Positions 3,545 to 29,789 of a DNA stretch of 64,000 nt are shown piece after piece. The DNA is taken from positions 2,356,001 to 2,420,000 of the forward strand of contig CM074808.1 of NCBI GenBank assembly GCA_037447605.1. Reading direction: 5' to 3'. The first letter of the stretch is position 1. Every line of letters begins with the position of its first letter. The notes beneath the pieces were generated by a model. That model was not told where the DNA came from. It searched no databases and saw only the letters and a list, made by a program, of their open reading frames with translations. The translations under genes and the position numbers were made by a program. Source of the stretch: Zygnema circumcarinatum SAG 698-1b (lineage: Eukaryota; Plantae; Zygnematophyceae).

Positions 3545-6936
<3,392 letters not shown>

Positions 6937-24956: not shown

Positions 24957-27387
24957 ATGGCGACTGGATCGTCATCGGTGAGTTGGCCACGCTTGCGTAT
25001 CTGAGGTATCATTGGGAGCGGTCCAGAGTCGAGGAGGATTCTTTGCTGTAGACAAACTTTCATTTTTTCCACTGGCTCCGCTGCACTTGTTAAGCATATT
25101 TGCAACCGGACGTCCGCCGCCTACATTACAGATGCTAGTTATTCAAATGCATTGCAGCTGAACATGCAGGGTTTCGTTTTGTTGGCGTTCAGGTCGGTGG
25201 ATTGTTTACGGGATTCACAAGGCTTTCAAAGGCGCTGGCCTTTGTGCTGTGTGTTGGCTACCTGATCGTCACTCTGGTTCCTGCGGCACTCAACTATTTG
25301 GCTCTGGTTCCGGGAAAGTAAGACCTTGAAACCCTTTGAAAGATCAAAATGCAGCATGTAGCCCTCAGTTGGATACAAAGGCTATTTTTGGATGGTATTC
25401 TTTCATTATTTCGCAGTTTGATAATTGCTTTCACTCGCAACTGCTCCTAGGGGTGGCTTCAGCGGTGAGCAGGCCTTGACCCCGGTGGTACTGACTTTGT
25501 ACTCTCATGCTTGAGCTGCAGAACTATCCCGTTTGCTTGGAATTTAGTTTCTGCGGGGTATGTCGAGAAGTCCTTAATCAGTGTGAGTTTAGAGTACCTC
25601 TCTTCAGCTATGATTATTACAGAAGCAATCTGCTTGTTGTGGACGGAAAGAGACCTCCGGAAGAGAGAAGCAGACTTTTTCAATTCTTGTATCCTGTCGC
25701 TTGTTCCGAGTTATGTGCCACCATTGTGAGAATCCTGAATTTAACTTACTGTAGTGTGGTTCTGCAGCTTATTGTCAACTCTTTGGCGTTGCTCTTTCTT
25801 GGGAAGTCCCTAGAGCCGGTATGGGGCTCGAAGGAGTTCTTCTGGTTTATTGTGGTCGTAAACACATGGACCTCCATTTGTACTTTCGTCCTCATGATTG
25901 TTCTCTACTACAGCACATTGAGTGAGCGGTTCCTGTAAGTATTCGTGATGCATGGCAGCTTGCAGTTTTTTTTGTCAAGTCTCTTTGCATAAGATATTTG
26001 TTGCGTCTGACTGGTCCTGCGTGGTGCTATGTTATTGGAATGGGAAGCATATTTTTTTCTTGATAGTGAATGAGTTGCTCAATATCATCTAGTCCTATCC
26101 GCCTTCCTCGATTTCGCTTCTCTCTGAGGGAGGTCTTATCTATTCTAGCCGTGATCTTGGTCATCCAGGTATGCTCCGGGTGCAGCGATCTGCGGCTTTC
26201 ACGGAGTCGTGGCTGGTTTTCTTGTTGGAATCAAGCAGCTTATGCCCGACCAGGAAATCACTGCACTATTCATTCTCAAATTCCGAGCCAAGGTATCTCT
26301 GTTTTCAACTTCGTCTATTGTCTAATTAAGGATAAGGAGTCCCACAGGCAATGCCAACCGGCGAAGCGGGTAGTGTTCTCCGTAGATATTTGTGGGACGT
26401 TCTGGATGATTGAGGGTTGGTCTTTGGGCTTTTGTGGAACGCAGTGGTTGCCATCCCTATTTGTGCTTTTCTCTTCAGTTTTATTCACCGCCGTTGGTGA
26501 CCCCGTCCAATATCTACCATTCATTATCTTCGGAACCTACATCAGCTGGATATATCTCCGATTTTACCAAAGAAAATCGGAGGCAAACTTGAAAGGGGAT
26601 CCTAGTGAGGAGTTTGCCTTCACCACTTTCTTTCCAGAATTCTTGAGGTAATGTTCAATTTGAAATGGCCTTCGCAGCGCACTTGCATTCCGATGAAGTT
26701 AGACATTTTTCGGTCTGACCATGGAAAGCTTGAAGAACTCACTGTAACCGTTCTGTTGATTTGTTTTTTTGTTTGTTGTTCTCTTTTCCTCCATTATGAA
26801 AATCCTAAGCGACTGTGGTGATATGTCCATCTATATGCTTGCTGGATGCTTGCCTTTGCTGGCTTTGGTTGTATTGCAGTCTTGAGATCGGAAATATAGA
26901 GTCCTTCTAGCAGTCACAATGGAGTGCCTTACAAAAAAATTACTCTTTTTGTCAGGCCCATTGTTGGAACTATTGCCACAATTGTTGGGCGGCTTTTCTG
27001 TGGACGGAGGCCCGCAGTGGACAACGCCAATGACCAAGCCTTCATTGTCGCTGGAAAGCCACTACCTGGTTCAGACCCTATTGACGCTACGCGCCGAAGG
27101 TAGGATAAAGCCCTAAAATTTCTTTTTAGTTGCATGCTTTAAGTTTTATGTTTTTTCTGCCGATTTTTCTGTTTTGATCATTTCAGGTTGCAGATGCTGG
27201 ATGCAGGAGACAGGCCTGTAACCTGAATTTATGTCGATTTCCTAACAGTTTTCTAATATTTTGCAGAGAACGCGGTGCACGAGCGTTGGAGGAGCGGCTG
27301 GCAAAAGCATCTTCTGATGTTCCCCAAGATGTGGCAGCTGCGTCAAGTAGCGATGCGGTTCCTAAGGCGGCTGATGAGCAAGTGTAG
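24957..27387 (+). CDS. Rhomboid-like protein 19 / TMEM115 (DUF1751) membrane protein, multi-exon
   Basis: MATGSSS|VGGLFTGFTRLSKALAFVL...YLALVPGK, PFAWNLVSAGYVE, LLFLGKSLEPVWGSKEF, WLPSL...FGTYISWIYLRFYQ...GDPSEEFAFTTFFPEFLR, LPGSDPIDATRRR|ERGARALEERL...EQV*. Confidence 0.88.
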
Positions 27388-27781
27388 GCATGCTGAAGGG
27401 TTTGTGTTCTGGTCATTCGTCCCGTCTACTGCCCGCCATCTCCTTGCCATCTTATGGTTTATGTAAAGCAAAAAGTTTTGACTTAGGTCTGTCTTTCTGC
27501 AGCTCTTGCGCGGTTGTAATCTTGTCGTTCCTTAATCCCTGCGTCACTGTTTTCCGCTCTTGGTGGAAGCTCGTTCATTTGCAGCAGGACGACTATGGGC
27601 TGTCTGGGGTGCATGCAAAGTGTCAGAAAGCCTGCAGATTCAGATCTCTCTCAGGCTTTGTATGGAGAATATAATCGCTGAAGTGTGCGCGGCCTCATGG
27701 ACCATGGTGCCTGAGAATCAACATGAAGTGCATGACAAATACAGACATCAGGAACAGAGGAGTCATGAAAGCTATATTGAG

Positions 27782-27892: not shown

Positions 27893-28273
27893 ATTGCTGT
27901 AATTGTCTGTAGAGAACGTTCCATCCTTGAGCGATTACATTTGCTAGATGGTCTGATGGTTAGCAGATTGGACGATATTTTGTGGATTGAACATTGTCGT
28001 CACAAAGTGCAACCGAGAACGAGAAACATGACCACACAAAAACAGAAATCCATTCTAATCACTGGTCGACCCTCGTTATTTTTGTAATGAGTGAAATCAC
28101 ATACTCCAGCTTTAAAAAAGAAAAGCATCCCCATTCTAAAGAATCAGTGAAGAAACCGAAAACCCTATTGACAGCGACTGATTCTGCATAATCTAAGATA
28201 ATCTACGATGTAATTATGATGTAATTTCAGGAACAAGACATGCTTGATTTAAAGAAGACCCAGACGGCAAACC

Positions 28274-28343
28274 ACTAGCGACAAATCAGCCACATCAGAG
28301 ACTCTGAGAGCCTTTTCTGATGTAGCGTCACAAGTTCGCTAGC
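28274..28343 (-). promoter_or_regulatory. Eukaryotic SECIS element (GUGA core, type II-like apex) in the SELENOK 3' UTR
   Basis: Minus strand: helix I GCUAGCGA/UCGCUAGU; core 5'-GUGAC...UGAU-3'; 11-bp helix II GCUACAUCAGA/UCUGAUGUGGC; unpaired AAA followed by a mini-stem GGCUC/GAGUC. It lies ~115 nt downstream of the in-frame UGA. Confidence 0.9.
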
Positions 28344-28448
28344 CTCGTGCTCGCCATCATAAAACCGATCGCCGGCTGAGAAATGTGACCGCGGCACCTG
28401 CCACTTCAGCTGCTCCGCCAGAAGGCGAAGCAGTGAGAAGCAGATGCC

Positions 28449-29666
28449 CTACCGACCTCACGATCCACCTGGAGCAGTCGCACCTGCCAATGACACGCAT
28501 CGCAATAAGAGTCGTGAGACACATTCATTATCAGAAACACGGGCCTGAAGTGAGGCTGACCAAACTTCCAGTTGAAGTGTTTTAAATGACGACAATGAAG
28601 AGACACGTGCAGAACTCGTGATGAATAAGAGACCATGATAGAGATGTGATCCCATGGCGGAAGAGTCAATTGTCAGTCAAACGAGGCAAAAGGGCTGCGA
28701 TGGTTTCTACTTACAATGATCAATTCCTCTAACGTTGCTCATACCACTCAATCCACGTCTGGCACTACCCCCACCACCACCGCCACCCCTCCCGCCACCG
28801 GGCCCACCGGGACCTCCTCCACCTCCACCACCACCTCCATTGTAACCGCCCCACTTCCCGGTACCTCCTCCACCCTTACCCTTTGACTTCTTGACGGAAG
28901 CATCGGGCTGCAAAGACAAAGAAACATCAGCTTATCAGATGGCAAAAGTCTAGAGACTTCTGCCACAAAAGGTTGCATCCTGAAGGGGAGAAGAAAAAAT
29001 CCACAAGGAAACTGCATGCAAGGTTTGCCATTCTAAAAATACTTCCGGGACTTCTTCATCCACCAGGGCGTGTCCCCTTGTCACAGTTCCACTTTGACAT
29101 CCATCAGAAGTAACTCACAAAACAGAAAGACCCTTGATTTCCAGGGGGAGTTTACCCAAAGCAATGAATTCGAACATTCAAGAATTTATTCTCCAGAAAC
29201 GTCCATGAAAGCATGTCTGCTTCCTCAGGAATCACACTGACTTTCAGTTTTGGACAAGTAACGAAATATGCTCACCTGAACAAGTGTAGAAAAAAAGACG
29301 CCGATAAGATTCAACACCGCCCAAAAGAATTCTGAGATAATACTCAACCTCCAGGGCGACCGCTTATTCACGATTTCACCTGCAGCATCCCACACCTCAC
29401 CACATCACCGAACTTCATCACCTCCTTCATCACCTCTTTCGATTTCCCTGTACCAGTCCAATCTTTCGCTCCATCCTAATCAGCGAAATCTCTCACAGAA
29501 TCCTTGCCGGAAGAACCCTTTAATGCTTGCCAAGTACACAAGTAACAATTTGCTGCTCCAAATCCCTCAGTGTGCCACATCGCCACGAGAAGCGTCCCTC
29601 TACACATCATCTAAAAGACCTCATATGCTCTGCAGGTCGTGGCGTACCTCCTACGATGTACGCCAT
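28449..29666 (-). CDS. SELENOK: Selenoprotein K (SelK/SelG family), 116 aa, Sec (UGA) at 28458-28460
   Basis: Exons 29648-29666, 29276-29379, 28715-28907 and 28449-28483 (all GT-AG, 351 nt in total) give MAYIVGGEIVNKRSPWRLSIISEFFWAVLNLIGVFFSTLVQPDASVKKSKGK...GGPGG...SNVRGIDHCATAPGGS-U-GR*. This shows the SelK signature: N-terminal xRSPWR motif, one TM helix, a Gly-rich tail and a terminal UGR, plus a downstream SECIS. Confidence 0.93.
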
Positions 29667-29789
29667 GGTCTCCCTCCACCTCCCTCCCCGCCTCCCCCAG
29701 CGCCCTCCCCCCTGCCCTCTCCTCGCCGCTCCAGCGCCAATTGGCACCTGCCGGCCGCCTTCCTCGCCTTCTCGAACTCGACCAGCAAC

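Follow-up and report, generated by a model that had tools for sequence, protein, structure and literature searches.

The locus examined here raises the question of whether a hairpin on the minus strand, at positions 28274–28343 of the window (the whole 64-kb stretch of DNA that was analysed), is a SECIS element, and whether a UGA codon upstream of it is read as selenocysteine (Sec). We consider it very probable (about 0.93) that the hairpin is the working SECIS element of selenoprotein K mRNA in this alga. This reading is supported by the anatomy of the hairpin, by a full-length, sub-threshold match to the Rfam model SECIS_1 and by a position in the 3′ UTR of a selenoprotein K gene that Pfam confirms. 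It is supported as well by contigs in which splicing is seen upstream and which continue across the hairpin, by equivalent elements in other algae and by the absence of such an element in homologues of the Cys type.

The selenoprotein K gene and its UGA codon

Upstream of the hairpin, on the same (minus) strand, we identified a gene of four exons. The coding part of exon 1 (29648–29666; MAYIVG-) begins with an ATG at 29666, and contigs from two of the transcript assemblies (X2 and X3) reach 29671–29675. Exon 2 (29276–29379; RSPWRLSII...FFW) encodes the transmembrane part of the protein. Exon 3 (28715–28907), recognized by its translation and by contig joints at both ends, encodes a glycine-rich segment that ends in ...GMSNVRGIDH. 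The coding part of exon 4 (28449–28483), for which a third assembly (X1) provides a splice joint (28481>28713), closes with a UAG stop at 28451–28449. The exons were searched one by one, each separately. Exon 2 alone matched the Pfam family SelK_SelG (PF10961) with an E-value of 1.2e-11 and a score of 45.5 bits, compared with a cut-off of 23.3. Word-index protein searches with the open reading frames that enclose exon 3 and exon 2, the frames being extended into the intron flanks, returned no match.

The last exon reads ...APGGS-UGA-G-R-UAG (translation GGS*GR*), with the UGA (28458–28460, minus strand) as the third-from-last codon, which is the Sec position of this family. The hairpin is located on the same strand as the SelK_SelG gene and past this in-frame UGA, as is the case for SECIS elements in 3′ UTRs. 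In the original prediction, the hairpin had been taken as independent support for a Sec call, and our results agree: it confirms the UGA of selenoprotein K as a Sec codon, which means that the selenoprotein K gene model should not be truncated.

Anatomy and folding of the hairpin

At 70 nt, the hairpin is assigned to form 2 of the SECIS elements on the combined basis of sequence, fold, Rfam SECIS_1 and a pattern descriptor. Helix I (28343–28336 with 28281–28274) consists of 8 bp, the outermost of which is a G-U pair, and lies below an internal loop made up of ACUU followed by G28331 on the 5′ side and of UUG, 3′ of the UGAU core, on the other. The 5′ core G-UGA-C (28327–28331), which aligns to AUGAc of the SECIS_1 consensus, contains the quartet strand U-G-A-C (28330–28327), and its tandem G-A partner, the 3′ core UGAU (28285–28288), aligns to CUGAU of the same consensus. 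UGAC (the 5′ UGAN) accordingly faces UGAU (the 3′ NGAN) between the two helices, and the non-Watson-Crick G-A pairs of this quartet are expected to form. Helix II (28326–28316 with 28299–28289) has 11 bp, including one U-G, and carries at its top an unpaired AAA (28315–28313). These As stand 12 nt past the core UGA, a spacing identical to that of the Rfam consensus, and fall in the range of 10–13 nt past the quartet that is characteristic of the unpaired AA or AAA. Above them, a mini-stem of 5 bp (28312–28308 with 28304–28300) with a UCA loop provides the feature that defines form 2. The A that is conserved before the quartet is replaced by G at 28331.

Both SECIS helices and the mini-stem were recovered by RNAfold, with a minimum free energy of −34.5 kcal/mol (z −4.0) that was equalled by 1 of 200 shuffles. 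When 28365–28250 was folded (−48.9 kcal/mol), helix I was prolonged downwards by 11 further pairs, so that the whole hairpin spans 28263–28358; the same extension was present in a fold of 231 nt. Every part of the anatomy described in the original prediction proved correct by sequence and by RNAfold. The spacing from the UGA, put there at about 115 nt, was measured as 114 nt from the Sec UGA to the first base of helix I and as 130 nt to the core UGA. A minimum spacing of approximately 50–110 nt has been reported for the function of eukaryotic SECIS elements, and the 114 nt found here exceeds it.

Rfam matches and chance expectation

Comparison with the Infernal model of SECIS elements, one of the checks suggested at the outset, succeeded in part. 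In an E-value search of 28100–28600, SECIS_1 (RF00031) aligned end to end (all model positions, 1–64) to 28341–28276, and the conserved U-UGACG, AAA and CUGAU agreed with the SECIS_1 consensus and kept its spacing, but the score of 24 bits remained below the gathering score of 35. The E-value of this alignment was 0.026 for 501 nt searched against 4227 families, which by division amounts to approximately 6e-6 for SECIS_1 alone, the family expected at this place. At gathering thresholds, Rfam gave no match in the 64-kb window, and an E-value search of the whole window did not report SECIS_1, which was lost to the search filters. Likewise, Rfam searches of the orthologue loci described below reported none of the orthologue SECIS elements, and the Rfam model is therefore insensitive for algal SECIS elements.

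Elsewhere in the window, at 4139–4531 on both strands, a cluster of weak Rfam matches (mir-297, mir-3149 and mir-1277), all far below threshold, lies within a 2-kb stretch of extreme strand skew (GC skew −0.83, AT skew −0.64). These matches look like a simple or low-complexity repeat, not RNA genes.

A score under the gathering threshold, in a region that is rich in stable hairpins and has a second one 45 nt upstream, is also what might be seen if a hairpin of another kind, such as a microRNA precursor or an inverted repeat of a mobile element, resembled a SECIS element by chance. A Lobanov-type descriptor was run on the two strands of the window (128 kb). It called for NUGA, 9–13 nt of helix II in which no more than one mismatch was allowed, AA, GA, and 6 bp or more of helix I, and it recognized one site only, the SECIS element at 28274–28343; in 60 dinucleotide shuffles of the window the mean was 0.1 sites. 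This expectation of 0.1 per 128 kb corresponds to about 1e-3 for the 1 kb past the selenoprotein K stop on the right strand, which argues against coincidence. Two further observations do the same. The window holds no additional copy or similar element: a search with a covariance model built from this one sequence detected no second SECIS-like site in it, the best unrelated score being 13.5 bits. In addition, the model built from the window element retrieves the matching elements of orthologues. A chance resemblance is thus exceedingly improbable, and the hairpin is best regarded as a genuine SECIS element.

Orthologous genes and their elements

An exhaustive protein search with the 34-residue exon-2 peptide identified 62 family members. 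A metagenome scan with a single protein gave no match, and a scan with an alignment of 6 rows gave 16 loci. Algal members of the family end at GG directly before the UGA, and all of the Sec-type loci that were checked have the arrangement GG-UGA-(1–2 codons)-stop. Exon 2 has its nearest relatives in Cys-type proteins from Sphagnum (a moss) and from seed plants, which end in ...CGSCC(A)G; a closest affinity to Cys-type plant proteins fits an alga of the streptophyte type.

Among the orthologue loci, the strict descriptor recognized an element at L003 alone, and a fold-based scan gave more. Since the orthologue elements had gone unreported by Rfam, the covariance model R1 was built from the window element only and used, with filters off, to search 76 kb (both strands, 20 loci). 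Its top six matches are all on the coding strand, 47–400 nt past the selenoprotein K UGA. The highest-scoring of these, at L003 (23.6 bits), shares with the window element a helix II of 11 bp and the AAA after it; next come the elements of L001 from [Myrmecia] bisecta (16.7 bits) and of the closely related loci L026 (16.1 bits) and L020 (15.4 bits). The two lowest-scoring matches are those at L002 (11.2 bits), without a clear AA, and at L013 (10.7 bits), which looks like form 1 and has no mini-stem. The expectation that the window element would furnish a lineage-specific SECIS model is borne out in that R1 retrieves the elements of algal orthologues, but as a one-sequence model it is only weakly useful, its background in the window reaching 13.5 bits as compared with 10.7–11.2 bits for L013 and L002, both of them plausible orthologue elements. 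The metagenome contig that carries the selenoprotein K gene of L013 also contains, at 2238–2281 on the minus strand, a match to the histone 3′ UTR stem-loop, whose 21.3 bits fall short of the gathering score of 34.

A MAFFT alignment of the elements (A3) was inconsistent with the structure and was dropped, and the Infernal alignment from the one-sequence model was used instead. Covariation in the orthologous UTRs, which the original prediction had proposed as a check, is evident in this alignment of seven elements: 22 of the 24 pairs show double changes relative to the window, in an alignment that was fitted to the R1 structure, and so is biased towards pairing, and that includes distant orthologues only. 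Compensatory changes occur in both helices. Standard pairs make up 92% of the cells, a share that drops to 57% when the columns are shuffled and that none of 1000 shuffles reached, and the UGA, the GA and the As are invariant.

When R1 was applied to homologues of the Cys type (L029 and L030 of Sphagnum, and L011), it found nothing after the stop, and its best score anywhere in these loci was 9.1 bits. These three, as well as the proteins P0003 of Sphagnum and P0013 of Malus, end in ...NVRGIDHS..CGSCC(A)G, with Cys for Sec and no SECIS element. The Cys forms of Sphagnum, Malus and L011 represent a clean Sec-to-Cys replacement beside the algal Sec form.

Land plants have lost selenocysteine, and the lineage of this alga is close to them. 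The hairpin could accordingly be a relic that was functional in an ancestor, with the UGA now terminating a protein that ends in ...GGS. The nearest exon-2 relatives, Cys-type proteins of a moss and of seed plants that do without Sec, would be in line with such a loss, as would the small size reported for the selenoproteomes of streptophyte algae (PMC6627142). However, all of the diagnostic bases and both helices of the hairpin are intact and are accompanied by the extra basal stem of 11 bp, and the two codons and the stop that follow the UGA retain the pattern of the family. Moreover, the lineages that gave up Sec changed to Cys and lost the hairpin. A relic is for these reasons very unlikely, and we favour a SECIS element that is still in use.

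Transcript evidence

Five Logan-assembled runs from two studies, of unrecorded library type, cover the stretch. The joint 28907>29276 is present in the contigs of X1, X2 and X3, and the joint between exons 3 and 4 in those of X1 only. The skipped ends at these joints are CT..AC, that is, GT..AG on the minus strand, and the X1–X3 assemblies, which come from both studies, therefore contain spliced RNA of the selenoprotein K gene. Run X6 had no contig on this gene. Contigs that start at 28483 (X1) or 28742 (X2 and X3) cross the hairpin and reach beyond 27500. The concern that the transcript might end before 28343 is eased by this continuity through the hairpin, but not removed by it, as the strand, depth, poly(A) and 3′ end of a transcript are unreadable in contigs. 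The hairpin-spanning contig runs on into a convergent gene on the plus strand, at its 3′ end, and is therefore not proof of a single transcript.

The convergent gene, at about 26800–27400, appears to end near 27385. One contig of X1, 1688 nt in length, extends without a break from selenoprotein K exon 4 through the SECIS element to the end of this gene; the 3′ ends of the two genes may overlap, or read-through may occur. Intron 3 (28484–28714) is removed in the X1 contig. The contigs of X2 and X3 are continuous from exon 4 through intron 3 to exon 3, which means that either a form retaining this intron or else unspliced RNA or DNA is present as well.

Predicted recoding and a second stem-loop

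By analogy with the established pathway, a kink-turn would arise from the tandem G-A pairs in the UGAC/UGAU quartet. SECIS-binding protein 2 (SBP2) would bind this kink-turn and recruit eEFSec and the accompanying Sec-tRNA(Sec) to a ribosome that has paused at the UGA. The UGA at 28460–28458 would then be decoded as selenocysteine, and translation would stop two codons on, at the UAG. The Sec machinery is kept by all streptophyte algal lineages (PMC6627142), and its retention in streptophyte algae is well known (PMC6627142, PMC7539508).

A separate structure, which we refer to as the proximal stem-loop, is found between the UGA and the SECIS element (28393–28448, minus strand). It comprises 56 nt and 24 bp, folds at −40 kcal/mol when taken alone, and begins at the first base past the stop, 9 nt past the Sec UGA. 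In a context of 83 nt (28462–28380) the energy is −45.1 kcal/mol (z −5.5), and no hairpin within 350 nt to either side is as stable. The chlorophyte [Myrmecia] bisecta, a distantly related green alga, has a hairpin of 54 nt in the same place (L001, 3415–3468), and the base of the stem, GGCAUYUGCU...GCARGUGCC, is common to the two, including one compensating double change from C-G to U-A. At 8 of 11 Sec-type loci, a small sample in which GC-rich loci are uninformative, a hairpin starts no more than one base from where the stop codon ends. A post-stop hairpin stands out in energy in the window and at L001, L005 and L028, the best one starting 3–5 nt past the stop in L005 and L028. No post-stop hairpin was found in the two Cys-type transcripts examined.

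In mammals, a proximal stem-loop (PSL) has been predicted at this place in mRNAs whose Sec is C-terminal (SelS, SelK, SelO and TR1; Cockman et al. 2019, PMC6844570). The algal stem-loop, which starts directly past the stop of a gene with Sec two codons earlier, is comparable to the mammalian PSL and to the SRE of selenoprotein N. It is, however, much larger than the PSL of human SelK (24 bp versus 8 bp), whose deletion was without effect (PMC6844570). Judging from sequence comparison, selenoprotein K mRNAs might possess in the hairpin at 28448–28393 a second recoding element of ancient origin, a suggestion that we make tentatively and with more doubt than conviction. If it were correct, the proximal stem-loop would delay the ribosome while the UGA occupies the A site, and so favour Sec-tRNA over release factor.

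Comparison with known SECIS elements

The element described here is an ordinary one of a well-known kind: SECIS elements, their G variant and the use of Sec by streptophyte algae have all been published. It shares with RF00031 SECIS_1, and with the NUGA_AA_GA pattern of SECISearch, a helix I, an internal loop, the UGAN/NGAN quartet, the AAA bulge and an apical mini-stem. Also as in SECIS_1, 12 nt separate the core UGA from the As, and the site is in the 3′ UTR more than 100 nt past the UGA. It differs from SECIS_1 in having G for A, in its sub-threshold score and in the 11 pairs added to helix I. The six SECIS elements of other algal selenoprotein K genes resemble it in gene, in side of the UGA and in architecture, with compensatory changes in the pairs; in contrast to the GUGA of the window element, all six have AUGA, and they lie between 47 and about 400 nt past the UGA.

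The G before the quartet had been described in the original prediction as part of a rarer core. This is accurate for animals and in relation to the six orthologue elements, among which the window element alone has G, but not for Ostreococcus, where G is the norm, or for Chlamydomonas and a sponge, where it is common (PMC2375036, PMC3473315). In Ostreococcus, all but one of the SECIS elements of each species have G before the quartet, together with a long paired mini-stem (PMC2375036), and GUGA_AA has been described as common, indeed as the main pattern, in a sponge as well as in Chlamydomonas and Ostreococcus (PMC3473315). Because it has been published for Ostreococcus and Chlamydomonas, the G core is not new for the green lineage. 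It is a variant that SECIS elements tolerate and that the NUGA search pattern allows, one typical of green algae and to be expected there, not an oddity.

Compared by their published description, the SECIS elements of Ostreococcus tauri, O. lucimarinus and Chlamydomonas reinhardtii have a paired mini-stem and, immediately 5′ of the quartet, a G that is unpaired, as does the element in the window. The mini-stem is short here (5 bp), in contrast to the "long mini-stem" that has been stressed for Ostreococcus, and the host, unlike Ostreococcus and Chlamydomonas, is an alga of the streptophyte type. The G-type core is thus not confined to chlorophytes, and the locus adds a well-documented SECIS element from the algae whose lineage stands nearest to land plants, at the stage immediately preceding the switch from Sec to Cys and the loss of the element in plants.
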